DNA of 64,000 bases from Takakia lepidozioides (taxonomy: Eukaryota; Plantae; Bryophyta). Where the stretch lies: the NCBI GenBank assembly GCA_030704615.1, contig CM060732.1, forward strand, positions 39,866,001-39,930,000, in the 5' to 3' direction. Position 1 is the stretch's first letter; the number at the start of each line of letters is the position of its first letter. The translations under genes and the position numbers were made by a program. Shown piece by piece: positions 4,101-61,800 of the stretch. Under the pieces are notes generated by a model that was given only the letters and a program-made list of their open reading frames with translations, searched no databases and was not told the origin of the DNA.

Positions 4101-7100
4101 ATGACGGCAGGTCATGCAGATAGTTATGCCTGGGAGCAATGAGCAACAAGTACCACTAGATCAACTCCACTAGTGCCTGGGCTTCGTGTACACCCTCCAA
4201 GATGCTCAATGCAATGCTCCTACAATACTTTTGGTGTGCTTCCTTTAGGGACCAGTTGTTTTTACTTCAAAGTGCAAACTATGAGCAAAAGCACAAATCA
4301 AAATCTTTATAGGATTGGATGCCTACTTCTTCCGTAGCTTGCTTAAGAAGAATGTGGCAAAGGGTATGTCCACTAAAATTCCTTCAAACATGGCCTGCAC
4401 ATACAAAAGTAGCATCATGCCACCACAGCTGAAAGTCAAATGAATTGGGCATACACATCAGAATAGCTCAATTTCTAGCTTTCAATGCTGTTATTTCACA
4501 GAAACTGTTGTTTCTGGAGGCTGGTCAGTCAGTGTGCTATATTTTTGTTCTGATAGTTTGTTTTGAGCCTTCGCTGCTTGTTTTTTTCGGTGTTTCTGAC
4601 TTATGAGGTGTTGTAGGGAGAGATTTCGTAATCAAGTTTGATCTGGGGTCTTCGCCTTCAAAGAAAGAGAAGAGAGAAAGAAAGACACTTTATAACGCCA
4701 ATGGGAAGCTGATTGGACAAAAGAAAGCAGGATACAAGGAATACTTCAAAGTCAAGAGATTATCTATGGTGACATGCCTTGTGTAGAATGAAGCCAAGCA
4801 TTTCTGGTCCTTATTATGAAAGACCTCAGCAAGCGATCCTATCTTGGAATAGACTATACTATTGACATGGATCTCATAGTAGACAGGGCAGTAAATGCTC
4901 TTCAGTCTCAATCTCTCGTGAACATCTCTAGTGCAAGCAGGGGACAAGCGGTCAGCATGCTATAGGTTGTCCCATCTACCAGTCTCTATCTGTAGGCTGG
5001 TCAAGGCTTATCAAAGCAAGTCAGAGTGAGCCCCTCACAAATGTAGTTTCTGGTCCCTTCTGTTCCGCCCAAACTGGGCACGGGGTCTATGGCCACAAGG
5101 CTACGGCAACAAAGTCTTATGAGTACATCTATCTGTAGGCTGGGTGAGCCCACCCTGAACCTCCCATCCCCATAGAAGAGCTGGAGATAGAGCTGCAAAC
5201 AAGTAATTGAGCTGTAAGATTCTATCATCACATAGGACTAGGAAGGTGTCATGGTAGAACTGCAGCTTTGTTGTAAGCTTCTCTGGTTTCCAGGTCCGCG
5301 GAACATCGACTCCTGTCTAGTAAGATTGTTGGGGTCATGCCAAGAGAAAATTCCAGTGTTCTGGATTTGTGGCAGTAGAGATGCAACAGAAAGGTCGTCC
5401 TTCAAGAGACCCGAGCATACCAACAGGTCTTCAAACCAGCTGCTTTGAGTCTCGTAGAGGTTGAGGGCATGGACATGAAACCATTTGAGGTGGTAGATGC
5501 CAGCCTTGTCAAGAAGATTGTTAGTCGAAATAGGGCTTCAGGTTTGGGTGGTAGAATCTTAGATGGTGTTGTACATCATGAAGGAAACATGCCTGTAGGA
5601 GTTCCAGATTTTCTCCCAACAGGAACAGGGATCCAGTGGCCCAGAACTCAAAAAGAAAAGATAGCTTCCAGGGTATCTCAAGGTGAGAGATTGTACTCAT
5701 AAGACATTTGCCGTAGCCTTGTGGCCATTGACCCCGCGCCCAGTTTGAGCGGGAATCTCAAGGTGAGAGAATGTAATCGTAAGACGTTTGCCGTAGGATT
5801 GTGCTGTGCAGCTTACCTGCATCCAGCACCTTGTCTTCTAGACACGAGAGAAGGGAGATTGAAACTGAAGAACAGTTCTTTCGCTGGCCTCTGTACTATA
5901 AGATCAGGGGGAGATACTTTTGCCTAGTCTGAGATAGCCAATCCCTTACAGAGGCGTTCCAGTATGAGAATCAGAAATGCTTGGCAGTATATCTGTATGA
6001 GGCGTTACATGTTAGATAATCCCTTGATGAATATCTCTTGTTGAGCTGCTTGTGGAGGGCCCACTCTCTTTCTTTTATCCTGCTTTCTCTTGGCCCATGA
6101 GCTTTTTAAGCTTTCCAAGGACGTTACGCAGTGTCTTTCTTTCTTCCTCTCTCACCTTCAGATCATTTATATCACAGTAAGTCCCACTACTGGAGTGAGC
6201 CACTCACAACGGTAGGGTCTGTTCTCTTTTGTTCTGCCCAAACTGGGCATGAGTGCTCCCCTCCCCATAGAATAAAGAAATTAATCAGTAGAAACAAATT
6301 AGGAAAAAAAAGAACACATGTTGGTAATGGGGCAGATTGTGTTGCATACCTTGCCAAGAACTTTGCCAAGAAATTCAAAATAGTGAAGATGCTCATCATG
6401 GACCATATGTGAGGCCGGATTAGGATAAAGAAGGTGATCAGTTGTTTCCTGCCAATGAACAAAGTGTAAATATACAACTAAGTACTTTATTTCAACCATT
6501 GAAAATATCAGAGAAAAGGAAGAATATGTACTACAACCAGGACTCGGTTTATGTCTGTGGTGGAAGTCAAATCTATCATACTGGTTGCATGTTTTCTAAG
6601 ACTTGCGCTTAAGAAGGTCTGCAATGTTGAATGGAGAGCTTTTTCGGTCACTCTGTCCTCAGAAGGTAAGAGATCCTGACACGTTCGGCATTGAGTGTTG
6701 GATTGTATCTTACAATTCGAGGAGGCTATCCGTTTGGTTGAGATTGCTCTGTGTTATTCTTCAGGTCTACCCTTGACGAGAAGTTAATTAGGCGTCCAAT
6801 CTTGAATGGAGATGAAATCAAAAGGGCATATAAATCCAAAAGAGGAAGCTTGCAAGCTACTATCCACTACTCCAATGCATATAATGTCTCATGCTCCACC
6901 TTCTTCGGCACTTGTCAAAATGGCCTATCTTTGTGTCACATGGTAACCAAACAGCTTGAATAGTTTCATGAACTATTTTATTACAAATCATAAACAGTTT
7001 TCTAAAACCTGCCGTCAGGCTATGCTTGAATGCTCCCTTGTTAATCTTAATTCTGACAGGCCCATCCATCCAAAGTTCCAGTCTTCCCCCTTCAATGATA

Positions 7101-10100: not shown

Positions 10101-13100
10101 AGTGGATGTTCCCTCTTAGGAAAAACTGGGAAGCCCTATCAATTATCTGTTCAGCCACTCCACCATGCTTGGATGCATGGCAGACAAACACATGGGAACT
10201 CAGCCATGTGACCAAGGGGCAAGAGAAATTCACACCTAAGTTCTACCAATGCTATTTTCCATTTACCTGTGATAATTTTCCTTGATGAGATTCATGCACC
10301 CACTAAGCAAACCAGCACATATGTCTAACAGATAACTGCCAATTGGACCTGGAGGCTCTACCTGTATGCCTTCGTCAAGGATTTGAAAAAGGAAAGACAC
10401 GGATATGAATTGTTTCTGTCAATATAGAGCTTCTTCTTTGGTGATCTTTCATCATGAAAGAGAATAATTAATTGGGTAAAAATGTGCCCTTAGTACCATT
10501 TCGAAATACGGTACACTTTTCAGCTGCCCTCTCGACTCTGCACTTCTTTGCAGAAGCTTCTTGCAACATGGACATGCACTCAATGGTCAGTCACATGATG
10601 TTGAATGCAAGCGATTGTCTCACCTGTACACAGGGCAAAAGACAGACAGGGGTAGCATCCATCCGAGCAGCTCAGCTGGCAACTGCGTTTCAGTGAAACT
10701 CCTTCCCACAAGCTCAATGGAAGGCCAAGACTGGTACAATTGGCATCGCTTCATGTATGGCCACAGCTGTGGTACAAGCTGGGCAGCGTATGCCAAGCCC
10801 GTGATGACAACTGCGGTAGGCAGAATCATCGAAGTAGCATACAAAAATGCACAAGTTGCCCCAACTGCTGCTGCCTCAGCCTCTGTTGGGGGTTCGGTCG
10901 ATGTGCTCCCGGAGAATGTAACCCTGACCTAAGGGAAAAATCAAGTAACCCACCAAAATCCTTAATACTACTGACTATTGAGTCACTTATCTGCCCATCT
11001 CACAATAGCAGCTCTCTCGAGCCCGAGCTAAGAGGTGCTGCCCAGGCCAGAGATCTATCCCCCACTCAAATTCTTCATTATCTCAATGGCAAACCTCCTA
11101 AAGAAGTCAGTGGAGGAGGTGAGGAAGAAGCTCAAAAAGGCCAGACAGGAATTGTTGCTCAAAAAGTGAAGGAGCATGGTCCAGATTCCTAGCTAAGATG
11201 ACAGGGAGCATATTCCATGAGTTCATCAGTTCAGCTCTCTCTCTCTCTCTCTGCCTTCCACACTACTGGAGTGAGCCCCTTACACAGATGGTGCTTATTC
11301 CATATGTTTCTGTCCCAACTGGGCACGGGGTCTATGGCTACGGCAAAAAAAGTCTTATGAGTACATTCTCTCTGGCTTCCACTGGGGATCTCTTCTTCCG
11401 CTTCTTTCCCTTCGTAAGCACTCTGAACTTCAAGAACCCCTTTTCAACAAGGTGCAAAGAAGGCATACCAGATGCTTCAGCAACTCATAATTGGTAGCAT
11501 GGAGAAGCTGTTGCTCCAATGCAGGCTCTGGAACTATTGTCCTTCCAGTCCCATCAATTTCCATCTCATCTTCACCATCTACACATGCCAATATGGACAG
11601 GATCAGACCTTGTGCAATTAGAGGCCACTGCAGAGGTTGGTTACACGTGCAAGCACAGAATTTTCTAAACCTCATGTAAGCTTTGGGATACAGGAAACAA
11701 CCCTCGTCCATGGTCTTCACAGATTTCAAAAAGGAAGGCGGAAGCTCCTCCATCAAATATCTAGCAACCACTGCAAATTCTGTTGCCTGTAATTACAAGG
11801 AAAAAACATGACAACTGTCACCACAAGCATTTCAGCAGCAAGGCACTGCTCATTGGCATAAATAAATCTCACTTTTTCTTTCTCTCCTTTCCTTTCTTTT
11901 TGTCCCTGTGGACATTACAAAGTTTCTTTCTTTCGTTTCTTTCCTCTCGCGCTTCTCCCACATAAAGTCCTCTTTAATAGACTTTACAGGCTTCTTGTGG
12001 ACCTTACGATGTTTCTTTCTTTCTTTCTTTCTTTCTTTTCTTTTTGATATAAAGTACCTGTTTGAATATGTTATAAAGTACCATTTCATTTCCTTTTGTT
12101 CTGTCTCCAGCAAGCAAGTGTAAAAAGTGCATCCCTTTCTGTGGTTTTACAGTGTTGCTCTACTTGTCCCATTGGCCCTCAGAGCCCCAAGTCGACTTTG
12201 TACAGTTTCTTTCTTCCTCCTCCTTCAGCCCAAAATGGAATGCAGACCAAGACGACTAGCAAAAGTAGAGGATAGAGGATTTTACCAGCTGTAAGGTGCA
12301 GTCTACTCGGGAGAGACCTGACCCTGCCACATCTACAAGGTTGCCAAGGAGACAAATATCCGAGGGAAGTCCTGGTGCAATATCTGGAGGTAGTGAGCAC
12401 AGGAACCCCGGCAAAGATGATGCTATTTGGTGAATAGAGTGCGCCCATAGACCCTCATTCACACACACCTGACACACCCAAATGTCCCAAGAAAATAAAT
12501 GGAAGGAAAGATTTCCCAGGGAAGACTTCCAACAACTAGCATATATGGAAGTAGAAGTTCATGCACAGTACACATACATATTCTATTTTTCTCTCTCTCC
12601 ATGGGCCTTCTCTGGTGTAATAATTCCTTCTTATTCTTCTTCTCCCACTCGTGGGGTCTATGTCCACAAGGCTATGGCAAACATGTCTCACCTACAGTAC
12701 TATATTTGGAATGTGAAAAATAGGGACGTTGATAGTTCGAAACCTACGCAGACAAGTATGCTGCCATTTTCTCTCATGGACCATTCTCGCTAATGCTCTT
12801 TTCTTGTTCTACCAGTTTTCTAGTTTGTTTTGGTCAGAGGAGCCCTTCAGGCTTCTAGTCAGCATTAAAATGTCGTTCTCAAAGATGTCAAATGCATATA
12901 CGTATAATGCTACATCTTGGTCTAAACCACTGCCACATATAGATGCTAAAATAGGTGGAACGAGGGTAACAAATGGGTCAAATGCACTTAACAAATTCAA
13001 GCAGATAGAAGAGCCTCGTACCTGCTTAAACATGGGAAAGCACTGCCAAAGCAATGGGATGGATAGTATCTGAGATGGAAAGCTCCATTGTGGTAGGACT

Positions 13101-16100
13101 GTAGTCCCAGCCTGCAATCTTTGGATGTATTTTTTGGCCAAACTGCACACTGCATGCTCCAAGAAGCTCTTCACCCCTGTTGTAGCTCCTCTATCTTGTG
13201 GTTGCTACCCACAGCAAAAAAGCAGAGAAACAAATTGGTGAGTTTGAGGGCCATACAGTCCACTACTTCAAGGCATCCTTTTGCTCAAATGTTGGGGTTT
13301 GTGCAAAACGTGTACTGCAAATTATAAACATGAAGACTAAGGCAAACTCTGTTGAAATGATTATCTTCTTTTCTCCTTGCAGAGGAACTGTTTTGCATGT
13401 TTGTGTGTACTCATTAATTGTGTACAGTAAAGTCTGAGCAGTTTTGCATCCCTCCCCATTTCCTGCCGGAACTTCCAAAGGGAAAAATTGATTCAATTGT
13501 GATGGCATTTTGTAAGGTAATGAAGTGAGGCAAAATATGGTAGCGCAAAATAAGCTAAATAATTACCACTGTAACAAGAATGCCACGGACGAAATAGAAA
13601 AATTTGTTCCGGAGGAGATGGTCCATAATGGAGCCTGCCCTGGGATTGTCATTCCCTGTCAAGGTCAGTAGAGTTTCCAGTAAAACTGTAGCTGAATCGC
13701 TTGCTGTCGTTGGCGAATGGGCAGGCCTTAACAGCTCTGATTTCAGGGTTGCACTACACACGCACAGAGATACGCACAAGAGTGGGACACTGACAGAGTA
13801 TCACTTGGATTTCTCAAGAAGCTTTAAAATTTAAGTCTCAACAATTATATGGCAACATGGTCTTCATAGAGCAATAAGGGTGCAACTCCTATCTATCACC
13901 ATTGTCATGCTAACCACACATATGTGAACACGCGAAAGTGACAAAAATATTCAACACTACTTGTGCACTAGCCAGTGATGGGACTTTAATAGCTGCAATG
14001 TCTTGCACAGGATGGTGCCCAATAGTGGTTAGCAAATCAGAGACAAACACAGCCTACCACTGGCTCATCACACTTACTGCATCAAGGCTAAGAGGTTCAC
14101 AGCCTCAGCACCCAACAGTTTTCTGCTGTTGTTTTCCTGCAAAAAGTAGATGCCAACTTGCCCCACTAAAGGACAAAAAGGTGTACTTAATGGATACAGA
14201 GATTTATCTGATGTATAGGTTAACAAGAAAACAGTACTCACCAATTATGATAAAGGGCATCAACACACATGCATGCAAGACGCTTCAGCCTGTACTCTGC
14301 AACGCACCAGTCTGGAGCTTTGCCATCTTCAGTGAATAGGGCCTCTATGCTAGCTGCACAACAAAATTGCCATTAGGGTAGTCATCTCTGGCTTTCTCAC
14401 CCTCACACCTAAGGCTAGCCTCACAACGCAAATACCTTATGAAAGCTTGCTACTCAACAACATTAGGACAAGGCTGAGTACAACCTATATCTCGGCAAAA
14501 AAAGCCACACTGAAACTGTTCACATACTCACTCAAGAATCACTGACAAGCCATTGGCAAAGGCATGGGAAGGGTGAGAGCAAGGACAGGAATAGACTAGG
14601 GAAAATGACTAGTTTGTAATACAACTTGCATGTTTAATACCATATGCTTGCCACAGTGATCCCACATGCGAGAGGGAAAGAGAAGAAAAATAGATCCCCA
14701 TCTCCGAACCCACGACTAACAGTAGCTTTCAAAGCAAAGCAATTAATTTTGCCTCTCTTCCAAGCACAAGTACATGTCAAAGGATGCCTCTTACTTTTCT
14801 GTCTCAGACACTCATGGAGAAGGCGACAAGCTCCCACAAGACGTCGAACATCCCCAGTGTTACTTGCACGAAAGAAAAAAAACAGTTGTGGGAGGTACTT
14901 CGAAGACGGATTGAATGCCTTTCTGCACACATCATCCAAAACCCTCATATTCTGCACAATAAGCACATGGTCCTAACCACGGCAAACCAAGCCGAAAGAG
15001 ACAAAGAGGTTTGATACGGATTTTATCCTACCTGCATTTGAGAATATTCAGTCAAGAAAAGGCTGAGAAATTTGACCTGTCTGCCTTCTCACCAAATTCA
15101 CCATAGACTGCACAAAACTCCCGTCGGATGACAGGCCGTTCTGCGGCAACTGCCTTTCTTCCTCTTACAAATTTCTGTACAATTACAAGAGTAAGTCATA
15201 ATGTCAATATATCCAGTTGGCAGAAGCTCCAGACTCTCATCCTTTCTCTCCCAACATATGGACGACATTTGCGAAGCATGTTAGGGCTGGAGTCAATTCA
15301 TATGTTCCCTGTGCTAAATGGACTCTTATTCAGTTCTAACCTAATTGCCAATGTCTGTACCAGTCAACCTTATGCTCTGTGGTCTAGCAGCACTGAGAGT
15401 TCAAATCAAACAATCCATTGTCATCAGTTTTCATCAACTGTACGCAACTGCAATGGCAATTTCAGGTTGAGTGGGGTGACCCCTCACCACCACCTGTGGG
15501 AGGGGTAGCATCCAAGGAGAACTATGCCTTTAAAGGCACATCATAGCCACAGTACGTAGGGAATGGTCATTTGATAGTCATTATACCTATGCCTAGATAG
15601 AGCTGAAAAGTTGCAATCTCCTGCTGCCACCAATGTAAGACAAAGTACTGGAGGGCAAGGCTCACAGGAACCAGGGACACAGTTTAAGTTTGACAATTCA
15701 TAGTTGCTGATTTCTTGTGAAGACGTAGACTGAGAGAATCAGATTGGTGGGGGGGGAGGAGAGGCAACAGTGAATACATGGTTCCACACATAGAACGTAC
15801 TATACTCAATTTTCTGGGAGCAAACAATGTTAAAACAGGGGATGCCCCAACGGAAGGGCCTCTTATTCACTAACTATAGAACAGAGGCCAGTAATGCCAG
15901 TCAATTTAGTTTTTCAATTACAAAATCCAAGCCGCCATGTAGAAGCTGCAGGCGATTTTCATACCCCCGATGACGCAAGTGGAGCAAGATAGGTTGAAAA
16001 GTTTGCAAAGGTTGAAATAGCTTGCCGTATCATTGTGGAAATAGACCCTGTGCTCAGTCTGCGTGAGACGGAGAGGGAGAGAGAGAGAGCGGGGGGGGGA

Positions 16101-17071: not shown

Positions 17072-20000
17072 ATGATGTGCGCAGCTGTCGGGGCGTGTCA
17101 TTCTTCTCCGTGCGTCCCTGTTTGTTTGAAGTTGATATCTCCTCAATTTAGCTGTCAGTCTGAGTTAAAGCAATCTGGTGGTGCGAAAGCCATAAAGAGG
17201 AGAGGGTGTAGGAATTGGTGTTTGCTTGCGTTTCGTAGGCAATGGAGCTCTTCCCTTAGCCATGATGAATTAGATACTAGCGGAGTTAGGAGCGTAATTT
17301 TGAGAGTTGTGGAAAACAAGCGCCTAGAGCAACATTATATCACTGTAAAAGATGAGAATAGAGGAAGGAGCGGCCAGGCAGAGAGACGACTACAAGATGG
17401 TAATGCCGGTATCGCAGGGCACTCGTCAGTAACTGCCCGACGCCAGCTGTTATTCAGCCTTTCTGTGGCACTTGGAGCACTAATGTTGGGCAATGTTGAT
17501 CTTCCTGCAAAAGCAGCAGTTTCAACGAGAGTAAAGCTCAAAGATGTTGAAAATCCCAAGCTGCAGGATGCTCTCAGGGCGGCGGTTGCTGGAGACCTGG
17601 AAACTGCTGAAGAATTGTTTTCAGCTTTGATAGATGAGGATTCCGCAAATGCCAGTGTCTGGTCCAACCGGGGGAGTGTGAGGGTCTCCCTTCTGAAGTT
17701 TGAGGAGGCGGCCCAGGATTTCAGTAAGGCTATTGAGCTGGCTCCCGAGGCCCCAGTCCCATTTCTTAATCGCGCCATTTCTTACGAGGTAACTATAACC
17801 ATCAATCCAAAAAGATAGAACTGATTTGCTTTGTCTGGAGTGCACCTTTTTTCCAGAGCAGTTTCTGGCTTTAAGCCAAAGAGTGTCGCACTATAGGTTA
17901 TCCTGACGGTCACAAAAAAAGCACTATGAATGGCTACGACAAATTTTAACTGTTCAAACAAAGAACGGATGCCTTTTTGCAATTTGTCATTGACATTGAT
18001 GCGCGAGGTCTCAACCAGACTGAAGGATTCCAGAGCAGGTGCAGCATATTTTGGGGCTCGTTGTAGACAGATTTCAGACAAGGAACTACATTTGTGGCTC
18101 CTCAACTAGCCAGTTTTCAATTTCTATTGAAGGCATTGCAGCATTAAGAAGCAGTGGCACAGACTTCATTTTATATGTAAAATTCATGCTAATAATGTTT
18201 GCTCAACGTTATTTAAGAATGTGTATTTCAATTATTGAACTGGTGAGAATTTTAGTGCTAATCAACAAACATACAACCTCAAAGATCATACTGTGGTGAG
18301 AGATTTTGCACTAACACTATGGGGCTTTGACCTCTTTGGCATGTATAAGACCTGCTAACATCAATAACGTTTCTGTCTCTTCCCTTCTCTGTATCTCTTT
18401 GTCACCCGATAGGCACTTGGACGCTATCAGGAGGCTATTGCCGACTGCAAAACTGCCATTGTCAATGACCCTGAGGTGCCCCGTTTTCTTTCAGTTTTTC
18501 GTGATTAATGTGTTGTTTGTTCAATGCTGGCTCCCTAAGTACAATGTTGGGAGACACAGTTACTGTCATAAGCTTATGACTAGCAATACCTTTCTTACCC
18601 AATCTTCTTCAATGATTCAGCTGAGCAGAACCATGATTCCGTCATTTCGATTCATAGAAGAAATATCCTCTCTACAGGATGGCAATAGAAATTCCATTTG
18701 CAGTTCCTTGTTTATAGTAACACTTGAACAGACTGAAATTCCAAAGCACCATATGATATTTTAGAATTATGGCAGGCACTAACAGCTGTTTGGGTGGGGC
18801 CAGGAGTTTGCAGCTTGGTTTAACTTGGGAAATGTGGAAGCACGAGTACGTGACTATGACACTGCTTTGACTGCTTATTCCAGAGCCTCAGTGCTGGCTC
18901 CTGGAATTGCAGGATACCGACTCAAGCAAGCTCTGGTTCTCTTTCAGGTTTCATGCTGCATCTTTGTGGATGAAGTGGTGTTTTCAGCTTGTGTATGGCA
19001 TGGGCTAGATGTATTGGTGTCAGAAGTAGAAGATCTGAGATCCATAGGATATCACATGAAGGTGCCAACTAACGCCTTTCTGGCATTGTAAACGGAAATT
19101 TAGAAGTGGGAGTCCAAATAAGCAGGTGAGGTTGGGTAGCTGGCCCCCCTCCTCCTTTTTGTACTCGATTGACGAGGCATGATTATGGTGTGTTTCATTC
19201 TGGGGGAAGAAAAAGAAGAAGATGATTTCAAGGTTAAAAAGTTTGAAGGTCGTACCGGACGAAGTACCAAATTGACCAGGTTGATAGTCCTTACAGCTTC
19301 TGTAGCTCATGCACTTACACGTATAATATACTCTGGATGAAACCTCCAGGTAGAGCAATGCACACAATTGAAGTTGCGTATGAAGTTGGTCTTTGTTAAA
19401 CTAGTATGACTGTATTGACGAAGCATTTGAGGGCAATGTACTGAAGGCAATTTACTGAAGGGTGTGCCACTGGCTGTTTGCAATGTGGGTGAGTCATTAT
19501 ATTGAGTTGAAATCTTAGTGTTGCAATCTACAGCTCGACAGATTGGGAGAGGCCAAGAAACTGATACAAGGCCTTGTCCGGAAGTATCCAAATTACACTG
19601 AGGCTCATGCAGCTCTAGCGGCAGTGCTGTGGAAAGAAGGTGACCGCAGCCGGGCAGAGGAACAGTTCTCTGAGGCCACTTCTCGGGAACCGCAGTACAG
19701 CAATATCAGGTAGAGAGTTTGTCTCTCTCTCTCCTCTCTCTCCCTCTCTCAATATCCACAAGGCTACAGCTAAACGTATGAGTACATTCTCTCAATATCT
19801 GAGGATTGTCTGGAAGGCAAGAACTCCTTCAATCTGCCAAGGTGCGGCCTACTAGCCACTGGACTGGCTTAATTATTACCATCTCATATTTATGTGTTGG
19901 ATTATGTCAACTGCTGTGTTTTTAATGCATTGAACTGTTGTCTCAAAGCAAATTCTATCAGACATCCACTTTTTGCTCATTCAATTGAGGTATGACCTCC

Positions 20001-20224: not shown

Positions 20225-21857
20225 GATAAGATTTTGCCAAGCATCGTCTTCAAGTAAGCGAAGCGGAAGTCTACAATTGTTGGGGTAAGCCGGGGACAAG
20301 TAGACCATTGCCGTTGTATCCCTTTTGTAGACCTCTACGAAGTGGAATTGTTGATTCTTCCCGGATGAATGCAATTTGGATGGCAAGTATTGCAGTCATC
20401 GGAATGGATGGACCCCTAACGATGCTCTCGTCTTTGCTAGCTATGCAGGCGGCGTTCTCTCTATTCGTGAGCTATATATGTGCTACAGCTCCAGCTCTTT
20501 GTATTAGGTTTCCAGTGCATCCGTTTGCTGTCTTCTTCAGCCCTGGGTTTGATAGTAGCTGTGTTTCTTATCTTGTTTCTGATGTCGGAAGGCCTCATAG
20601 TATCTGGTGGTGCGAGCATGCCTTTGCAAGCTATGACGGGTTCACCTCGTTAGGCAGACTACATCGAATTTGCCGGGGTTTTGTGACGTGGATTGGGTCC
20701 TTGTTTCCTTCTCACAGTACTTTCTACTTCGCAAAGTTGTGACTTCCATCTTCTGGAAGACGCTATTGTATGCCCAGTCACGTCTGCAGTGGTGTGGTGA
20801 TTATTTTGTAAGTGTTAGTGATAATCAGGATGTCCGTGTTTGAGAAGTCGCCTGGAGTATTCAATGGTGTTGAACTGAAGAGGTTAACATTTGTTGTTCG
20901 TCTATGAGCGTAAGTCAAATGGCCAAGGATGGAAACTCTCGAGCGCAGTTGCAGCTGGTGCTGAGTCCTTGCTTGCAAGGAGAACCTACTCAGTGTGCCT
21001 CTGCATTTCTATGACGCATAAACTTTTACTGAGGCCGTCGTATGGTTTCCCAAGAATAGCAAGTGTCGTGCTTACCAAAGGCTTACTAATGCATTGAGAA
21101 AAGTGAGGTGGAAGCTTTTGATTCGTGTAGGATATTGAAATAGAACCTTTTGGAAGAGCTGGATTTTGAATGTGCCGAGGATAATTTTCGTTCCTTTCCT
21201 ATGAGTGAACCTTCATGTCTGCGCTTTTGAGGAGCAACTTCTGGTACGTATGTTTCGTTTCATGCAGCGAAGTCCCATGTTCTTGGCGATTGCTAGTAGC
21301 TTCATCGTAGACCCGATCTAGGTCTAGCAGTGGTTGCAGGGGAAGTTCTGGTCTGTCGGGAAGTGATGACGATACATCTCGACATATCCGAAAGCATGTT
21401 TATTACATGCATGTGGATTTGCGTTTGATTTGCACGTCAGTCTGATCCCTTCACAGTAGCACTTCCACGATTCTAGAACTCTTCCGAGAGCTGTTGATCA
21501 GCCACCGAGTTGGAGCCTTGATAGACTTTTAAAGTCTGCTTTGCATTGAATTCCGGATCTTTGAGTTCTGTTGTTGAAGTAGATAATCATCGATGATTAG
21601 TGATTCCCCATCCAATTATCACCATCTTCGATTGCTGCTACAGTCAAACTTAGTGCCCATTAAAATAAAGCCCCCCAAGTTTGGGTGGCCCCTGTTCATT
21701 TTTTATTTTGTTTTTTATGCAAAGGGAGCAGAGGCCCTTTTGATCAAATTAATAATAAAAGGTTTAACAGAAATGAAAAAATAACCATTGATGAGGCTGT
21801 GAAGGCTTAATGCGGGAAACTTTTCGCTACTGAGGAAGCAATGGTGCCTGGTCATTC

Positions 21858-25787: not shown

Positions 25788-28700
25788 ATGGCCGTTGTGG
25801 TGGGTCAAATCCACAGGGGAGTAATAGGTGCATGGCGTCACTCCACGGTGGCATCCCTACACTCCCTCGTATCCCATCTGAAGGTACCCCCTCTCCCCTT
25901 CTCTCTCTCTCTCTCCCCAAAGTCTGGATGCATACCCTAAGTCCTGGCTCAAATGCGCAGGGAGGAGTAGGGACATGCCGTCTCTCCACGGTTGTATATC
26001 TCTACTCCCTGGCATTTCATCTGAAGGTATCTTTTTTGGATTCCAAGAGCTTCAGAGGGATTACATGCAACTCCCTCAATTTCTGTGTCTCAATAGCAGG
26101 TGTTTTTCGGTGGTAAAGAAAGGATAATCTCCAAGTTCTCTGTCATGGACTCAATATCAGGGGCATGGAACCAATTCCCTTAACCTCAGGAATGGCTTAA
26201 ACCCTGATATATAGTATGTTCTCCAGAAACCCTAGAAATACCTGCAAGTGTTTGCTGCCAATATTTCTAATAGCACTGAATCTCTTTCATGTTCTCTCTC
26301 TCAGCATTCATTGTATTGAAGGTTTATGAAGATCAATTTCATGTTTCTGTACAGGATGTTGCCATGTCGGAGGGCAACATCGCAGGTGCAGAGGTAGAGG
26401 CCATGCAGGATGCCATCTTTGAAAGAGAGACATCTCCCCAAGCAGGCGACAACCTAACTCCTCCATCCCCTTCACAAGGTATCCAATAAATTTTTGCTGC
26501 ACATCATTACTAGTGTAAAAGATAACTACATTGAGCCTAAAGCAGTGAAGAAAGACCAAAAATAACATATTGCAGTTGCAAGGGAGGGGGGAGGTGGCAG
26601 AGAGAGAGAGAGTAGACAGTTCATGATCAAAACTGAAAACGGTCCCACATAGAAACACATAGAGAGTATAGCATCTCACTGTACAGCCTTTTCAAGCACC
26701 CTCATAGTTTTTCAGTCCTCATTATGGCAGTAGGAGGAGACATAGCTCATACCCCAAACATATAAACTCCATTACAGTTGCTTAGAGATTCCTGACTTCT
26801 TAGTGAAAAAAGTTAAAAAGAGCAGATTTGTAAGATATACAGCTATACTTAAGAGGGAGGGTGGGTGTATGTATACTCGCCCTTTTGGAACTGTTGGTGT
26901 CAACCATTGATATAGTAAGCTCACCCTAACCCCAAGGATGGGATGGTGAGCTTAGTGACTTCAAAATTAACAAACACTCAAAATCTCTCGACCCAGTTCT
27001 GCCTTTACAAATCCTTACTGGAAATCCAGTTTTCAGGTGCTCTAAGTGGTAATCAGATGCACACTAGGTAGGCCCTTCTCACAAACAGATCTGCCTCCTC
27101 ACTTTCATATCTTATGGAAGCAACAATAGGAGGAATGTCTCCTTAAAGGCAACTTTTTTCCATGAAGGTGCAAGGTCATAGATCCTTCAACCCCAGAGGA
27201 AAGCAGCAGTGGTATGTTTAATACATACAAAGATTGAGGTTTGAGAGAGCTCAAAACCTCACTAGTCTCTTGCCCTTAGTAGCATTCCTGCAAGAAAAGA
27301 AGGTGAACTGGATCCATCACAGCCAAGCAACAAACCAATAGGTTAGATCCCTGTGGAACCTCAGGCGTAAACCACTTCACATTCCTATCAATGACATCCT
27401 GCAGCAGGTCATACTAGCAAAGAGAGGGGGGGTACGGGAGGTCCTTTCAGCCATTTCAGCTAGCAGTAGATATACAACTCAGCAGTACCTATTTTAGCCC
27501 ATGCTTTAGGTTAAGAACCCTAATCAGTAATTCCAATGAGTCATCCTGTTCCCTGTTTTCCCTTTCTGTTCTAGGCAAAAACTCTGATTAATGGGATCAG
27601 GCAGTTCATGAGTGCTGTGACAAGGACTTTGCCTCATTCAAGGAAAGAGACAATGTACTCATAAGAGGTTGTTTGCTGTGGCCTTGTGGCAATTGACCAT
27701 TTTGAGCGGAACACAAAGGGACAGGAACTACCTTTGTCAGGGGCTGACGCCTGTAGTATGACTTACCTTGGAACAGACAATTGATCCGAGTTTTCCAGAT
27801 ACCAGATATCCTCTAGAAATCCCTTTACACAAGCATCAAGGAAAGAGAGAGGGAGAGAGAGAGAGAGAGCCTCTCATTTTCAGGTTTCCTAATTCTGACA
27901 CAAAGCAGTAGCTACAGTAGACTAGCTAAGAGGTCAATGTACATTGACCACATCATGTAGAAGGTGTACACATATACTGCAGGATGCTGCTGCTACAGGG
28001 CCTTAACAAGAGATCATGGATTAGTTCGCCATCCAATGTCATGTTCGATCACTAGGAACCTTCATGAACACACCATTCTCCTTGCCTTACCAATAGAAAT
28101 TTACAAGCAGCTCAACAAGCAATATCTCAACACCACGACAGGATTAAGTAATCCAAGAGTGGAGTTAGCCATATTCAAGGATAGAAGAGAGCCAGAGGCC
28201 TGATCAGGCAATTCTTTAGTGTTGTTACAAAGAACTTTGCCACGTTCAAGGAAAGAGAATGTACTCACAAGACTTTGTTTGCCGTAGCCTTGTGGCCATA
28301 GACCCCGCACCCAGTTTGGACGGACAGATTGTACTCATAAGACGTTGTTGCCGTAGCCTTGTGGCCATAGACCCCGCACCCAGTTTGGACGGACAGATTG
28401 TACTCATAAGACGTTGTTTGCCGTAGCCTTGTGGCCATTGACCCCGCGCCCAGTTTGAGCGGGAACAAAAGGGACAGAACCTACCTCTGTCAGGGGCTGA
28501 CGTTGGTAGTAAGACTTACCTCCATATAAAGAATTAATCCGGGTTTTCCAGATTCTTCTAGAAATCCCTTCACACAAGCATCAATCTGCTGTGTGTGATT
28601 TGCCCAAAAACTAGGCCTCAGGAGGGCCTGGGCTTTTGGCTCAGCCTCGAGACTTTCAAAGTTGGTAAACAGGGGTACAGGCACAATTCCCTTAATAGAT

Positions 28701-31700
28701 TTGAAGAGAGCGTCTCTTTGGTGAGAGAACCCCGGACAGTGTATCAGAAAATGAATACTGTCTTCAGATTGCCCACACAACGGGCAATTGCACTCTCCCT
28801 TTCCTCTCTGCTTCTGTTTGCTGTTCAAAGGTAGGCTTCCTGCCCTGAGTTTAAATTTCAGTCTAGTGCCGAGAGTGGGTAGACCCTTGAGGTCATCCAA
28901 GATGTCCTCCCCCATGTCACAGACTGGAAACAAGTTCAGGGAAGTTTTCTGCCTAACTTCATTTTCATCAGACAATCTCATGGCAACAGACATGGCTGAG
29001 GACACTACAGCCTCTAAGTCAGATTTATCCAGCAGGGTCAAGACTTGCGGATCCAAGTCCAGGTCCTTGAGGATCTTTTCTACTCTCTTCTGCCAGGACT
29101 TAGCCTGTTTGACAGGGCGGTCCTGTTTCCAAGATATAGAGTCGATTAATTTAGGATATCTGGTGTTGGGCATATGTTGCAGCTGACCCCACCATCTGAC
29201 CTTGAATTCATCTCGTCGGGAGCTTAAGGACGGAATGCCAAACTCACCCTGAACAGCCACATTGGCTGTTTTGGAGCATGCTGACATACACTCCTTAAGC
29301 ACCCCCACTTGAATGGATTCTAGAGACTTAGCCTGGTTGGAGTTATCAACCCATATAGCAGATCCGTACTCCAAGGCAGGTCTAATAATGCGACAAAGCA
29401 TGGTTTTCTTAACCTCAGAGTTGACCCCTCTGCAGTGGAAAAATTTAGTGAGCCCCAGAGCTTTGCCCTTGCCAGTTTGAACAACTTTCCGGATATGTGC
29501 ATCCCAATTACAATTGGAGGAGAACTCAACGCCCAGGTAAGTGTAGAAAGGGAGGACCGGGATCTCTTGGCTACCCCACTGCCACTTAAGATCACTTCCT
29601 CCCTCTCCTCTATCGTTGAATGCTACCACTGCACATTTGCTGACATTAGCTAGCCCCCAAAGATCAAAGTATCTCTTCGCGCAATCAATCAACTCCTGGA
29701 GATTGGTTGGAGTCTCCCGTATGCCTGCGAAGTCATCCGCAAACATAAGGTATGGTGGTAACACCCACCCTTAACCCAAATCCCTCACTTTCCACATCCT
29801 CGAGGAGTTGATTGATGAAAACATTGAAGAGCAGAGGGGAGAGAGTACATCCTTGAGCTACACCTTGGTCTATGTCAAAGAAGTTGGACTTCTGTCCGTT
29901 AACAGTGACACAGCTTTTGGTGTGAGCATACAAGTTGTGGACAACTCTCCACATCTTTCCCTTGATCCCACAAGACCAGAGGCGGAACCATAGGCCATCC
30001 TCCACACTGTGTCATAAGTCTTTTTGACATCCAGGAAAAAGACATAAGTGGGTTTCCCTTCTTTTTTCCTTCCCTGGATAATCTGGCTTAGAGTGAAGAT
30101 ATGATCCACACAGCCCCTGTTTCGCCGAAAGCCAGCTTGGCCTTCGTGGAAACAACCTCTAGACTCCAGATCAACCTCGAGACGAGTACTTATAACTCTG
30201 CAGAATGTCTTGCCAACAGCATTGAGGAGCGTGATGCCACGGTAGTTCCCCAGTCCTTCTCTGTCACCCTTCTTGTATAGATTGACAATGACCCCCTGTC
30301 GCCAGCGAAAGGGATCATTTCAGTCTTCCAGATAAGGTTAAAGTGGAGAACTAGGGCCTCTATCATGGGATCGCCACCGTGCTTGATAAGCTCGTTGACA
30401 ATACCATGAGGTCCACCAGCTTTATATCCATTTAAATGTTCAATTGCTTCCACAATCTCAGAAGAACTAATGGGAGCATTATAAGCCATTGAAATATACT
30501 CCAGTACATCAGGGCTGTTTTGAATCATAGGAACAGTTTTTCCAACTGTGTCCCTCCATTCAGCAGAAGACCCCTCACTGTTAGACCTAGAAGTTCTGCC
30601 AAGGATACTGTAGTGAATTTCAAAGGTTTTGACAATGTCAACCGATGAAGTCACCACTGCACCTTTAGTAGTCTTCAGCGCTTGTACTTGCTGACCGTTT
30701 TTCGGTTTGTACACCAACCAGAATTTCTTGTCATTACCACCATGGTGGTTTGAGTTTATTTCACTGTATAACTTGTCCCAGTATAATTTCTTCTGAGACC
30801 TAACAAGCTGATTGATATCTTTACGGAGCTGGTAGTACCTCGCCCACAATTCTCTGTTGGTTTCCAAATTGCAGCACTCTTTATAGAGGGCTCGTCTCTC
30901 AGCTATCTTGAGTTTAATCTCATTAGTCCACCAATTAACTGCTCTACCGCAGACAATTAGTTTCCTCCCAATTATCTTGTCAGCCACGGAGGAAACGAAA
31001 CTCTCCCAAGAGTCCACTGCTCTTTCGACTTCATTTCTTGCGTTAACAGAGCGTGACTGAAGTTCTTGGAGCGATTGGACAAAATGAGGGAGAGCAGGGA
31101 CAGACAGAGAGAGAGAGAGAGAGAAAGGGTGAGAGAGTTGCTGGTGAAGGTTGTAACTACGGTATGTATGGGTGCAGATGTGACGGGAATCCAAGCTCGG
31201 TTGCGTGTGCTGAAGAAAGAAGAGCACAGGCTTCATGACAATCTTATCCCCACTGCAACTTGGCAAGTTCTTAACCGTCTACATGAGATAGGTGAGCTCC
31301 TCCCAGCCGCCCCAAATGATACGCCCATCAGACAACCCCATGTACTTGACTGCAAGAAAAGAGTTCAGAGTCTGCTTGCAGGATTCTTCCCTACCCCATA
31401 CCCTGTTTGGATATGTGTGAAAGGTGAACTCTGTGCGGACTCTTCTTGCCGTTAGGCTTCTGGCCAACTGAAGGTGTTTATAGCAAAAATGGGGAGAGGG
31501 GTTATGGAGCGGACTGGACAGCAGAACGGGCCCCACTGCTAATGCTGAAGGTTTTGCTCGTGAAGTGGATCCGCCTTTGTGAAACAGTGATTTTTGCCTG
31601 TCCCATAACCCTATTACTGCCCCCCAAGAATGATCACCTTTGATGAGGCACAATCTGTGCTCATGTGACTTGATGATAAGGAAATGTTTGGCCCTCCGCT

Positions 31701-36989: not shown

Positions 36990-37031
<42 letters not shown>

Positions 37032-38699
37032 GGGATTAATATCCTAAGTTAATCGACTCTATATCTTGGAAACAGGACCGCCCTGTCAAACAGGCTAAGT
37101 CCTGGCAGAAGAGAGTAGAAGAGATCCTCAAGGACCTGGACCTGGATCCGCAAGTCTTGACCCTGCTGGATAAATCTGACTTAGAGGCTGTAGTGTCCTC
37201 AGCCATGTCTGTTGCCATGAGATTGTCTGATGAAAATGAAGTTAGGCAGAAAACTTCCCTGAACTTGTTTCCAGTCTGTGACATGGGGGAGGACATCTTG
37301 GATGACCTCAAGGGTCTACCCACTCTCAGCACTAGACTGAAATTTAAACTCAGGGCAGGAAGCCTACTCTCACCAAAGAGACGCTCTCTTCAAATCTATT
37401 AAGGGAATTGTGCCTGTACCCCTGTTTACCAACTTTGAAAGTCTCGAGGCTGAGCCAAAAGCCCAGGCCCTCCTGAGGCCTAGTTTTTGGGCAAATCACA
37501 CACAGCAGATTGATGCTTGTGTGAAGGGATTTCTAGAGGATATCTGGAAAACCCGGATTAATTCTTTATATGGAGGTAAGTCTTACTACCAACGTCAGCC
37601 CCTGACAGAGGTAGGTTCTGTCCCTTTTGTTCCCGCTCAAACTGGGCGCGGGGTCAATGGCCACAAGGCTACGGGAAACAACGTCTTATGAGTACAATCT
37701 CTTTGGGGATTAATGAAGTTAGGCATAAAACTTCCCTTAACTTGTTTCCAGTCTGTGACATGGGCGAGGCCCTTGAGGATGATCCAAAGGGCATACCTAC
37801 TCTTGGCACTAGGATGAGATTTAAGCTCAGGGCAGGGAGCCTACCTTTGAACAATAAGCAGATGCAGAAAGGAAAAGGAGATTGTAATTGCCCGATGTGG
37901 TGGGCAGCCTGAAGACAATATCCATTCTCTGATGTATTGTCTGGGTTATTCCCACCAGATAGTGACCCTCATCAGGAAAATCAAGAACGTTGTTCCTGCA
38001 CCTCTGTTCACCAACTTGAGGCTATCTTGAGGCTATCTAAAGCCCTGACCCTGTTAGGGTCTAACTGCTGAGCAGCTCACACACAGCAGATGGATGCTTG
38101 TTCGAAGGGCTTTCTAGAGAATATCTGGAAGGCCAAACTAGTCTTTTACAAGGGAAGTCCACTACTGCAGTGCCCCTCACAAAGGTAGCGTTTGTTCCCT
38201 GTTGTTCCCCCCAAACTGGGCGCAGGGGTCTATTGGTCCGAAGGCTACGCAAACTTCGTGTGAAGAGTACATTGTCTTCTTCTGCAGAAACTGGGAGTGG
38301 GGTCCACGGCCACAAGGCTATGGCAACCAACGTTTTATGAGTCGTCTTTCTGGGGATTCTGTAGCTGTTGTAAAGTTTGTTTCTAGTTCTATCTCATTGT
38401 TCTCTTAGCATGTTATTCGTAAGTTGTGTTCAGATGGTTGGCTTGATGGTGGGCATGAACAGGTTGTAGTATCGAGGCCGTATTTCTACAGAGCGGTGCG
38501 GTTATTTCAGAGGGCAAATGCCCCTGATGAAGAGGAAGAGCAACGACAAAGTAGAGATAGGAAGATCGAGAGTCCCGACCAGCCTGGGGCTCTAACAAGG
38601 GGAAACCTAGAGGAACTTAGCTTTGTATTTTCTCGCATTGTGCTGAACACTTTGTATCCCAATGGTGTGAAAAACAAAAACACCTCAGCTTTCTCCTGA
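25788..38699 (+). CDS. Bacterial-type (PcnB-like) poly(A) polymerase, class II nucleotidyltransferase, probably organelle-targeted, multi-exon
   Basis: Exons: [28 protein letters not shown] (~31803-31900, motif A GG..RD...DxD); [12 protein letters not shown] (~32507-32593, the PAP signature that distinguishes these from CCA-adding enzymes); KRDFTING; LMYDPF...[10 protein letters not shown]; [15 protein letters not shown]; [13 protein letters not shown]; last exon ...[16 protein letters not shown]...* at 38699. Start placed at [11 protein letters not shown] (25788), spliced in phase to DVAMSEGN (~26355). The 5' end is less certain. Confidence 0.88.
27651..27835 (-). mobile_element. Short 5'-truncated copy of the LINE
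   Basis: Homologous to ~28398-28585; 13-bp TSD TCAAGGAAAGAGA (27638-27650, 27836-27848) abutting (GA)n. Confidence 0.85.
28260..28397 (-). repeat. Two extra ~69-bp copies of the LINE 3' tail stacked behind the long copy
   Basis: TGTACTCA(C/T)AAGAC...GCCGTAGCCTTGTGGCCATAGACCCCGCACCCAGTTTGGACGGACAGA at 28260-28328 and 28329-28397. Confidence 0.9.
28398..31097 (-). mobile_element. 5'-truncated non-LTR retrotransposon (RT + C-terminal CCHC finger, RTEX-like), frameshifted, in an intron of the PAP gene
   Basis: RT motifs [51 protein letters not shown], and zinc finger [17 protein letters not shown], split over several ORFs. TSD GGACGGACAGA (28387-28397) / GGACAGACAGA (31098-31108) next to a (GA)n run. 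No endonuclease domain retained. The clade assignment is inference. Confidence 0.92.
34156..34264. repeat. ~55-bp near-perfect tandem duplication
   Basis: TGTATTTAAGATGTCTTT(T)GAGGAGGCTCTTGACTCCTTTCTCTGGGTG occurs twice. Confidence 0.85.
35820..36077. repeat. Perfect 129-bp tandem duplication in a PAP intron
   Basis: CTCCTATGCACATG...GTCACAAAGTA at 35820-35948 and 35949-36077. Confidence 0.9.
36289..36443 (+). mobile_element. Two stacked tail remnants at (CT)n, the second with a variant hairpin
   Basis: ACAACGTCTTATGAGTAC between CTCTCTCTCTCTTTCT repeats, then CCCCGCA...TGCGGGGTCAATGGCCGCAAGGCTACGGC...ATGAGTACA. Confidence 0.7.
37041..37697 (+). mobile_element. Young 5'-truncated copy of the same LINE, with an internal deletion of the zinc finger
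   Basis: Near-identical to the reverse complement of ~28400-29158. Perfect 17-bp TSD TCTCTTTGGGGATTAAT (37024-37040, 37698-37714) at the end of a long (CT)n just after a splice donor. Confidence 0.93.
37712..38345 (+). mobile_element. Older diverged copy of the same LINE family at the same target site, with a doubled 3' tail
   Basis: [18 protein letters not shown]...[13 protein letters not shown]...CNCP homology; tail motifs at ~38205-38272 and ~38280-38345; followed by TCTTTCTGGGGATT, resembling the target. Confidence 0.82.
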
Positions 38700-48457: not shown

Positions 48458-48535
48458 TGTAAAATAACAAGAACATAAACTAGTAAAGAAGACAAACTTG
48501 ACCAAACCAAGAACAAAAATTAACTACTCTCTAAA

Positions 48536-50079: not shown

Positions 50080-50107
50080 CTCTCTAAATGCGCCCATGCA
50101 TTATTAC

Positions 50108-57400: not shown

Positions 57401-58516
57401 AGCTGTAGTGCAGCAGACTGATAGATGTAGCCACGGCTAAATCGTGCAGTGCGGCCAGGGGTTAGGTATGATTGACGGCTACATACGAAGCTTGGCCTTC
57501 AAGGGCTGTAGCTGTCAAGGCTTAGGCGTAGCCCTGCTTTAATTATGTTGGTCGAGCTTCCTACACATATAGGGAAGCCATGACTTCCATTTTCACACAA
57601 ACAGGAAGTGGTCTCAGCCTTTATCTGCTTTTTGCAATTGCTTGCTGTGGATACGCGCAATGACTCCAGCAGGTCTACCTCAAGCTTACAAGGTTCTGTC
57701 CAGGGACACACCTTTACTCTCACAATCTTTCACTTGCTTACATCGCATGTTGGACAGCCATAGCAAGCATGAAGACCTGCCACTCACCTCGCGCATCCTC
57801 ACTAACACACATTCTGTTGGATGTGGGTCCTACACTTTTCATGGGTCTCCAAGCTGTATGTGTAAGTTTTGCTACAGTATGTACTCATAAGATGTTGTTT
57901 TCTGTAGCCTCGTGTAGTTTTGCTACAGAGTACTTAGGAAAAAAGGTGGAAATCACCTGTTGCATGAAGTAACCGCTGCCTAGGCAGAATGGTACAACGA
58001 TTGGTGTACTTCCATGCTTCTTTGAAGGAAGTATTAGACGAAAGTGATCTACCCTTGTGATGTCATACCAGAAGACTTGGAGTAATCTCAGTCTTGAGAC
58101 ATGTGATCTTTGAGGAAACTGTACTAATCTCCTTGCTTTGCAAAGTGATCAGTCCAGATATGCTACTAACTCTTCATACTCACATCTAGAGTGGACTCCT
58201 TGACTTCTTAGGTCTGGTGCTATCTCTAATTCTCTGTACCTTAACACCTCTAGCTAGTTCTGAAATGACATGGATAACAGCTGTGAAGGGGCTCTGAAAC
58301 CTGGCATTCCTCATTTTACCACTAACTTAGTTATTGTAGTTCTTGTGGAATGGTGCCAGGTGAAAGTCGAAAGGTGTAGCCATATCTTACTTTGAAGAAG
58401 CTGATGAGAACTCTCTCTCCAGCAAGAAATACAAACTTACCGATGGAAGACACATACTACCCTCATAACAAGAGCCACATACTGAAACAAGGTTCACTTG
58501 CACACAGGTACTGAAC

Positions 58517-58889: not shown

Positions 58890-61800
58890 GGCCATTGACT
58901 AACTCCCAACTCTAAACCATTGACTACAGAATTTGGGCCCTGCTTCATGAATCCTCTTAACCCAAACTATAGAAGAAGGCCCCTGAAATAACAAAGTGGC
59001 TTCACTGCTCTGTTTCTTTACTAAAACTTACTGTAGATTCTGTACAGGCAGGCCCTAACTCGGTTGTCCCACTTTGCCCTTTACACCCTTCACAAACATT
59101 TATATAATTGTGAAATTGATACTGTACTATTCATTAATTTGATCCAGCTAGTTATCTGTGTCCTTCCTAAGATGAGGACATAACTTTGCTGTTGCAGTCG
59201 GAATCCTCATTGGCTCTTCCGCACACATATAGGGCCTGGTCTCTTTCTTGTTCTCTCTTTCTCCCTTAGCCACACAGGGTCTATGGCCACAAGGCTATTT
59301 CAGACAACTATCTCAGATCATCAGAGAGATATCTAGTATTTAGAGTTGCACTAAAGCTGTGCAGGTAGGAAAGGAATGAAGGTGGGGGGATTAGTCGCTG
59401 ACCAATACATAGCGTTTGGCAGCACCCTCACAGTCATTGTCCATCTCCAAAACCCAGTCCTGTGATATGAATGTATGAAAGATGATTTGAGGGAAGTCGC
59501 AAAGGTGATCTATCTGCGAAACTTCAGTGAATTGCGTGAAGTAATTCATATAACCAGTTTGATGCATATTGTGATAATTCTGCTTTGAGACAGAGTGAGT
59601 GAAATAGTGTCAGTCTGTCTAGATGCAGGAGGGCCTATTCATATCTTTAGTCCCTCTTGTTCACTTAGAGCAGCTATGAAGAAGGTCAGAGTGCGACTGC
59701 TTCACTTTTGAGCAACATTTCCTCTCTTACCCTCCCCATGACTTCCCCGAAGGTCGTTAATTTATGTTTCTAGAGATTTGATAGAAAGTAAGAAGAACCT
59801 CTTAACGTCGTAACCGTTTTTCAGTTTTGAAAGAGAGCGAGGTATACGAGACAGGTGCACGGACATAGAAACACCAAAGTTGGTGTCTATTCGTTTGATC
59901 AATATGATATGCTATGCTCAATCCAATTTCTTGTCAATAGGTTCATATGGATCTGGGGGAGGGGGTAGGCCCAGCCAAGAGGGCAACGTACTCCTGGCAT
60001 TGGACTGGGCCAGTGTCCCTGTGCTGGGCAGCCTGCAGCATTTCACTGCCCTCTTGCTCGGTCACTGTGTTTCAGTGACTCTGTCATCATGATCTTCTTT
60101 AATGTAAGATGATCCATGGTGGGTTTGCCTCCACAAAGGAGATGCAATGCTTTAAGAATCTTCTCTTTAGGGTGGTGCACGAATGCAGTAGGCTCAAAAA
60201 ACATGAACTCCGCCACCCTTTGATCAAAGTTCTCAGAGTCAAAACGATTTCTTGCTGTTCTTGGCATCTCCTTTGATCACTGCGATTTGTGAGTCTGTGG
60301 GATTGAAGCATAATGCCGGCAACGTCGATGCAACATCCTTTTCATGAAGTTCCATATTCTTCTTCTGTCCTTTCTGAATGAAAAGAGGGAAAGGTTCTTG
60401 CAGTATTTTCTGGAAGCACGGGTATATGAACTTTACTTTCCATAACCTTAGTATCCTTTCTTCTTCTGTCTCTTCGAAGGCCAACTCCTCTTCAGCACAT
60501 TCAGCCTCGACCTCTGCAGGGTTCCCTTCCGGAGCAACGGGAGGAGCTGCAGGGGTGTCCGCTGCTGGGGCTATGAACCTCTGCCATCCTCTGGATGAAT
60601 CTTCCACAGATTACAGTCTTTTGGTCAGATTATCTTCGGCCTCTTGGTAGGACCTCTCCTCGTTGTTGATCTGCTCCGCGTTTTCCTTTCCAAGTTGACT
60701 GTCAACAAGCCTGACAGATGCCACAATGAGCTGGTCGCATTTAGGAATAGTAGTATCTAGTAATACCACACAACCATCCGCTACAAATCTGGAGGACTGC
60801 CAATATCCCATCACTTGCAATCCCTCCACTGGGAAGATGCAGTTTCTCCCCACACCGCAAGTCAATTGGAGGGTTTTAACATAGTGTACGCCTGAGAGAT
60901 CACTGGGACTTCTTGAAGATCTTATTAGGGAGAGAGGGAGAGGAAGGAGGAGGGTGAGATGGGATGGGACGCAGTGCGATAGCCAACTTCTCCATAATGT
61001 TTATCAATCTGCACATACCCGTTCTTTCATACTGATACAACAATTGCAACGTTCACATCAACTACAGTACCTTGACAAGTTTTGTAGCTGATTTGGTTAG
61101 CTGATTTGGCCACAAATTCTTCATTGGCGTATCACCTCTCTCAGATTTTCCGTTCTTTTCCCTCTGTAATGCCTCAGACAGTTTGTGTAAATCAGGAAGG
61201 TCAACCTTTCCTACAGCATTGACTGTTTTGTGGGAGTCTTCCTTAAATAGTTGACAGCTATTTCCTTGCTTGTGGTAACTACATGTTTGATACTCTTATG
61301 GTTGTTTATATATCAGCTCTCTGTGCGCTCCTTGGGAAGCTCATCAGATTGTGTAAATGCTGCAGAGGCATGCTTCACAAACTTGCTGTTATTTCATTGC
61401 AAGAGAATGTAAGAAGCAAATAAAAGACTGAAAAACAATTTGCTCATGGGTTTAGTTCAGCATTTTGAGACCCTTGAGGAGTTCAGAAGGTTGAAAGCCA
61501 CCCATCCACATAAAGCAGCGCTGAGCAGGGGTCTTCCACATGCCAGATACAAGGTGGAAAACATCGGCCTTGGCAGCTGACTTTAGGCAGAAAATATCCT
61601 CACAATGTGCCATGCCACCAAGCTAAGCTAAGCTTCAGGACAAAATGCATGCGGCACACCTGCAAAACCTGACCGTCTTCAAATCCTCGAGGCTATGACA
61701 CGAAATCCCCCGAACAAAAGAGTGCACTGCTGGGGTGAACAGAGGCTGTCTGTTGGGTGTTGCACAGGAGAGAGTGCCCAGGGTGGAGCTCCGATTCACG

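Follow-up and report, generated by a model that had tools for sequence, protein, structure and literature searches.

TCT at the insertion sites of a putative RTE-X LINE family in the land plant Takakia lepidozioides

What determines where a retroelement that has no poly(A) tail enters a plant genome? The question is raised by a 64-kb stretch of the Takakia lepidozioides genome (here termed the window, and the sole source of the statistics on target-site duplications (TSDs) and junctions given below), in which copies of a long interspersed nuclear element (LINE) with a common 3′ end repeatedly lie in front of the trinucleotide TCT, often behind runs of (CT)n. The TSDs reveal an excess of TCT at the nick site in this family. 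Comparisons of protein and 3′-end sequences place the LINE with the RTE-X elements, and it appears to be a new land-plant family of RTE-X, one that follows a TCT/CT target rule. The principle of such targeting is already known from fish, insect and brown-alga LINEs; a search of the accessible literature found no description of a TCT/CT insertion rule for a land-plant LINE.

A BLAST search with the longest copy, termed copy A, and two profile searches find about 20 fragments with the common 3′ end, which trace to at least 15 insertion events. Matches to two tail motifs are far above chance, with 12 matches to a 14-mer (0.5 expected) and 13 to an 18-mer (0.03 expected). An initial annotation of the window had reported the shared tail from at least 12 sites, and this is borne out; its sites near 6180, 12650 and 59275 are indeed tail fragments, but they are decayed and the readable end is missing. 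The 3′ termini of the copies consist of ...GAGTACA, which closes a 3′ handle of about 70 bases, and a short linker. No A run follows any of the tail junctions in the window, in agreement with the earlier statement that a poly(A) tail is absent. That there is no tail at all is a different matter, as the element probably has a one-unit (TC) tail; its closest relatives carry the handle followed by a long (TC)n. The copies and fragments are as follows.

28260..31095, minus strand: copy A, the longest; 5′-truncated reverse transcriptase (RT) and C-terminal CCHC region, with frameshifts
37040..37697, plus strand: young copy with 99% identity to A; internal deletion of 104 bp
37712..38342, plus strand: old composite copy, 77% identical to A, with a second mini tail at 38276-38342
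27651..27839, minus strand: copy B, 79% identical to A, behind a CT run, with the linker TTG
5001..5127, plus strand: 127-bp copy outside CT runs; perfect 16-bp TSD (4985-5000 / 5128-5143) that starts TCT
5691..5754, minus strand: handle-only mini copy of 63 bases; 16-bp TSD (5755-5770 / 5675-5690)
11261..11366, plus strand: 105-bp copy behind an 18-bp (CT)n run; 15-16-bp TSD with one mismatch, TCTCTCT at 11246
19756..19787, plus strand: 31-base tail copy at the end of a CT run; 11-bp TSD (19745-19755 / 19788-19798) that starts TCTCT
36290..36316, plus strand: 27-base tail copy inside a CT run; 16-bp TSD (36274-36289 / 36317-36332) that starts CTC
36375..36443, plus strand: older tail copy, followed by TCTCT
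57880..57914, minus strand: 35-base tail copy; 13-14-bp TSD, upstream TSD copy starts TCTG
6162..6253, plus strand: decayed fragment without a 3′ end, from a profile match
12640..12687, plus strand: decayed tail fragment, from a profile match
16016..16078, minus strand: decayed tail fragment directly behind a 13-bp CT run
59224..59310, plus strand: decayed tail fragment, from a profile match

Clear TSDs of 11-17 bp define eight events (5001, 5692 on the minus strand, 11262, 19756, 27654 on the minus strand, 36290, 37040, and 57880 on the minus strand), and a decayed ninth is found at 37712-38342. The upstream TSD copy begins with TCT in seven of the eight clear events, the commonest start being TCTCT; in the eighth (36290) it begins with CTC within a CT run. 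The upstream TSD copy belongs to the target and not to the element. The TCT frequency is 0.07 locally at the flanks and 0.022 for the window; with the TCT frequency of each reconstructed empty site as the background, seven or more such starts have P = 3e-8, or 6e-5 if three registers are allowed. The seven clear cases of TCT-starting TSDs in the initial annotation stand in the main, with the removal of 28398, which was rejected as a TSD-flanked insertion since it belongs, as a single unit, to a tandem array of tails. Copy 57880 was considered as an exception to the TCT rule and this too was rejected, given its upstream TSD copy; the first base of the downstream TSD copy has changed.

Several sites show how the copies are arranged relative to one another. 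The TSD of the young copy (37024-37039 / 37698-37713) starts TCTCT behind a 37-bp (CT)n run, and the insertion reused a site, namely the upstream TSD of the old copy 37712. Both parts of that old composite lie inside one decayed TSD starting TCTTT, so that its two tails came together or were inherited from the source copy; the spacer in its tandem tails (38191-38342, plus strand) contains three TCT units. The mini copy 5691-5754 sits exactly at TCT behind an older 26-base tail fragment, 5772-5797. Copy B has a perfect 13-bp TSD of its own (27840-27848 / 27638-27650) that starts TCTCT. The family has been recently active, as had been proposed: copy 37040-37697 is 99% identical to A yet has its own TSD, i.e. 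two 99%-identical copies have different TSDs.

The 3′ junctions can be read independently of the TSDs. TCT stands 0-3 linker bases after ...GAGTACA in 13-14 of the 15 readable junctions, where about 0.09 per junction would be expected by chance from the window TCT frequency of 0.022 per position. The young copies with 99% identity and the tail units next to them have A as the linker; five further copies (counting the last tail unit of copy A) have T; and the two old copies, with 77-79% identity to copy A, have TTG. The linker thus tracks copy age and is therefore templated, not a random addition.

The relation to CT runs is less strict. Eleven (CT)n runs of at least 12 bp are present in the window, and right behind seven of these a LINE copy starts, on the strand that reads CT. 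In the TSD-defined events that lie in or beside a run, the run is always CT, and not AG, on the element sense strand. Three of the nine events are at a lone TCT outside any run, and a CT run is therefore not required. The nick falls in the last three TCT registers of the run in five of six run-associated events (crude p 1e-3 to 1e-2), and the preference for the run boundary is a trend, with n = 6. The earlier proposal that insertion usually occurs at the 3′ end of (CT)n is thus upheld by the seven occupied runs but weakened by the lone-TCT events and by a boundary effect that is a trend only. The suggested use of intronic CT tracts as a safe harbour is a conjecture. No LINE handle was found upstream of any CT run in the window, and the notion that the upstream runs are tails of older copies was therefore rejected. 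Four CT runs of 14-25 bp are empty (25674-25698, 25900-25915, 34987-35001 and 26599-26612), and the first of these is followed by TTTCTC, much like occupied sites.

To which LINEs is the family related? In copy A the RT, with a Pfam RVT_1 match, is split over three frameshifted open reading frame (ORF) pieces. The window copies are 5′-truncated and are without the endonuclease region, and matches of the window RT to solved structures are to L1 ORF2p and R2, i.e. at the level of a LINE RT only. A word search with the window protein gave six relatives only, and further ones were reached via its second-best match, P0002. Among these are many Ectocarpus proteins, as well as full-length proteins, 1000-1130 residues long, that have both an apurinic-type endonuclease and an RT; P0016, P0022 and P0048 have Exo_endo_phos and RVT_1 domains in a single ORF. 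The copy A protein is 32-34% identical to P0016 and P0029 over the RT and C-terminus, from about residue 197 of P0016. P0029 contains exact motifs of the published RTEX-1_Ec32 protein, and Ectocarpus locus L003 encodes the published RTEX-1_Ec32 C-terminus almost letter for letter. Against P0029 the window protein shows 32% identity over 413 residues (E = 2e-62), the CCHC motif included.

The DNA points the same way. The 3′ handle of about 70 bases can be aligned across the window, Ectocarpus, four ENA metagenome loci and two Joint Genome Institute (JGI) metagenome loci; one relative, locus L006, is 3′-truncated. A conserved 3′ end of about 60-70 bases is common to the group, in keeping with RTE-X membership. 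The nearest curated kin of the window LINE are RTE-X elements and do not place it in the Tx1 clade. Because both the protein and the handle match RTEX-1_Ec32, the window LINE can be assigned, on sequence comparison, to the RTE-X LINEs, and the RTEX-like kinship suggested in the initial annotation is strengthened. The initial annotation knew of no described RTEX-like example in plants, but RTE-X LINEs have already been annotated in bryophytes, namely in the liverwort Marchantia (bioRxiv 10.1101/827881).

Folding predicts the same two hairpins in the handles of the window, L001 and L002; in L003 the first hairpin alone is clear. Hairpin 2 pairs GGCC/GGCU in the window, GGCG/CGCU in L001 and L004, GGCU/AGCU in L002 and GGUC/GACU in L008, and hairpin 1 is likewise changed on both sides among the relatives. 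Both stems stay paired through such two-sided changes, L004, L007 and L008 included, although the sample is small. It should be pointed out that the folding energies of single sequences are no better than those of shuffles, and that support for the stems comes from this covariation in a small sample and not from energy. The mini copies start near the base of hairpin 1. No Rfam family corresponds to the handle; the matches obtained are all sub-threshold, to an unrelated long non-coding RNA model.

A third hairpin is found upstream of the handle (28490-28510 on the minus strand, 5030-5050 and 11265-11285). In some copies its sequence is GUCAG-CCC-CUGAC, in others GUGAG-CCC-CUCAC, and this two-sided change keeps the pair; in copy A the hairpin overlaps the stop codon.

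The ends of related elements bear on how TCT is to be read. The 3′ end of L001 and L004 is (TTA)n, and TTA also opens their TSDs. In L007 and L008, which represent metagenome families P0002 and P0008, the handle is followed by a long (TC)n at the end. RTEX-1_Ec32 and RTEX-2_Ec32 of Ectocarpus are classed as LINE/RTE-X; they have a single endonuclease-RT ORF, terminate in (C)n on the 3′ side and have TSDs rich in C (PMC12477816). As judged from these sequences, the tail of the relatives matches their target. A metagenome scan for the tail pattern gave no matches. In Ectocarpus locus L003, short elements ending in C runs are stacked directly behind the C-run tails of RTEX-1 (5530-5660 and 2486-2600), and these stacks resemble the tails stacked at TCT in the window.

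The following mechanism is probably, though far from certainly, the correct one: a LINE of the RTE-X clade with an apurinic-type endonuclease would copy itself by target-primed reverse transcription, primed by pairing of the nicked target with a UCU end of the RNA. The RT would recognize the 3′ RNA handle of about 70 bases, with its two hairpins, GAGTACA and a subfamily-specific linker. The bottom strand would be nicked to leave a primer with the 3′ end AGA, which may then pair with UCU(CU) at the RNA 3′ end. The short (UC) tail would be renewed at each insertion, since every copy precedes the TCT of its own TSD. The expected outcome would be TSDs that start TCT(N)T, CT runs as frequent landing sites, and new copies that stack up, either immediately after an older tail or, by use of the same CT-run site, just in front of an older copy. 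As the tails of the relatives match their targets, TCT may be read as a (TC) tail one unit long; its pairing with the nicked target could be aided by a preference of the endonuclease. If so, the RNA would extend into TCT, and RNA-target pairing rather than the endonuclease alone would set the site. The element had been described earlier as sequence-preferring; the TCT excess at the nick agrees with this, but the preference may stem from such pairing and not from the endonuclease alone.

Several points weigh against this pairing mechanism. Only 8-9 events have a defined TSD, all from one 64-kb window, and copy A, the longest, is without a clean TSD; those sought 0 and 60 bp downstream gave weak, low-complexity matches (p ~0.02). 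The window copies have no repeated TC tail that would show UCU on the RNA directly. Among the relatives the TSD evidence consists of two loci and one curated table, and the RTE-X placement is by nearest curated kin. In addition, an endonuclease preference for TCT would yield the same junctions, and may act as well.

This last point leads to the alternative that deserves most attention, i.e. that the endonuclease alone recognizes and nicks TCT(C)T, as has been proposed for the fish Kibi elements at TC repeats, and that no pairing takes place, the RNA stopping at the linker. The precise nick register is what such an enzyme would produce, the three events at isolated TCT outside runs agree with it, and the five of six run-associated nicks in the last three registers fit a DNA-shape preference at the tract end. 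The related (TTA)n and (C)n families speak against it, as their TSD starts match their own tails, and the closest relatives have (TC)n tails. Pairing explains the tail-target match more simply, as the endonuclease and the tail need not change together each time. Recognition by the endonuclease alone is therefore a possible explanation, but not the probable one.

A more elaborate proposal is that the shape of the DNA, together with its sequence, lets the endonuclease recognize where a polypyrimidine (CT)n tract ends on its 3′ side, and that each insertion rebuilds the landing site. This is rather doubtful; if true, a land plant would have a self-renewing integration system that is specific to tract boundaries.

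Perhaps the upstream CT runs grew by slippage after insertion and the boundary is secondary, which would be compatible with the pairing mechanism. The insertions do lie at the 3′ end of runs, long pure runs are unstable, and the run-associated events number only six. Yet the four CT runs without a LINE copy show that runs exist independently, and the 37-bp run was already present when the young copy landed beside the old one; slippage is thus improbable as the source of the pattern. Still less credible is the idea that TCT/CT is the element's own short microsatellite tail and that the insertion sites are random. The long (TC)n ends of L007 and L008 might suggest this, but the upstream TSD copies already contradict it, being target DNA that starts TCT in seven of eight cases. 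A purely regional bias, by which copies gather in CT-rich DNA such as introns or open chromatin with no base-level choice, would suit the CT-rich flanks and their raised TCT frequency but has next to no likelihood, given that the register is non-random even against that local frequency and that the adjoining runs of TSD-defined events are always CT, not AG, on the element sense strand.

Comparison with known systems helps to place the pairing mechanism. The closest parallel is with RTEX-1_Ec32 and RTEX-2_Ec32: the RT and C-terminal CCHC region are homologous, the 3′ handle aligns in DNA, there is no poly(A), and a short homopolymer or repeat end is matched by the composition of the TSD. Both systems also have short tail-only or non-autonomous partners in tandem; in Ectocarpus the non-autonomous partner has the last 60 bp in common and ‘can be present in tandem’ (PMC12477816). 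They differ in that the Ectocarpus elements have a (C)n end and a C-rich target in place of TCT/CT, their host is a stramenopile and not a plant, and protein identity is only about 32%.

Kibi elements of the Tx1 clade are fish LINEs reported to be specific to TC microsatellites (PMC3812793). Kibi resembles the window family as a LINE of the apurinic-endonuclease type that lands at TC/CT repeats, and a fixed short nick-site motif is found here too. It differs in clade, the nearest curated kin of the window LINE being RTE-X, and in target: Kibi is reported to target TC microsatellites, whereas the window copies are at the 3′ edge of a run or at a lone TCT. The latter are not inside repeat arrays, in that 3-12 bases of CT give way to unique sequence in the downstream flank and three of nine events are outside runs.

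LINEs of the stringent type, such as UnaL2 of the eel (L2 clade), have a conserved 3′ stem-loop and a short repeat that are apparently recognized by the RT, and form very short tail-only copies. The window handle is similar as a conserved 3′ stem-loop with compensatory changes, and tail-only copies are also found; the clade is different, and RT recognition of the window handle is putative. L1 inserts at TTTT/A, the TSD start matches the tail, and tail-target pairing aids priming. The window family shares with L1 a TSD start that matches the element tail, but L1 has poly(A) and a loose AT-rich target, in contrast to the 3-5-base TCT(CT) match with no A run seen here.

The insertion rule is of use at the base level for one of the most abundant repeats of this plant genome, and aids repeat annotation. 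It explains the stacked tail arrays and the frequent occupancy of CT runs. The family also offers a workable natural system in which site choice by an endonuclease can be set against choice by RNA-target pairing.

Some minor features of the locus may be added. The 3′ end of copy A consists of three tandem tail units of about 69 bases each (28260-28467), and the spacer between them, on the minus strand, is TCTG both times. The last tail unit of A together with the next 55 bp (28202-28304) aligns unbroken, at 83%, with the tail and 3′ flank of copy B (27595-27698, minus strand). Copy B lies 600 bp away and nevertheless has its own perfect TSD; the shared stretch could represent a local duplication or a 3′ transduction.

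Outside the LINE family, the window contains two features that mark the host as a plant. One is a plant C/D-box small nucleolar RNA, Z122, at 21355-21452 on the plus strand (46.4 bits, gathering score 38). The other came from a Pfam scan of 10 long ORFs of the window. It is a 400-residue ORF with an SAD/SRA domain (E = 1e-45) at 40248-41450 on the minus strand; its best named matches are plant SUVH proteins, with 35-44% identity, and SRA-only metagenome proteins are closer, at 57-63%.

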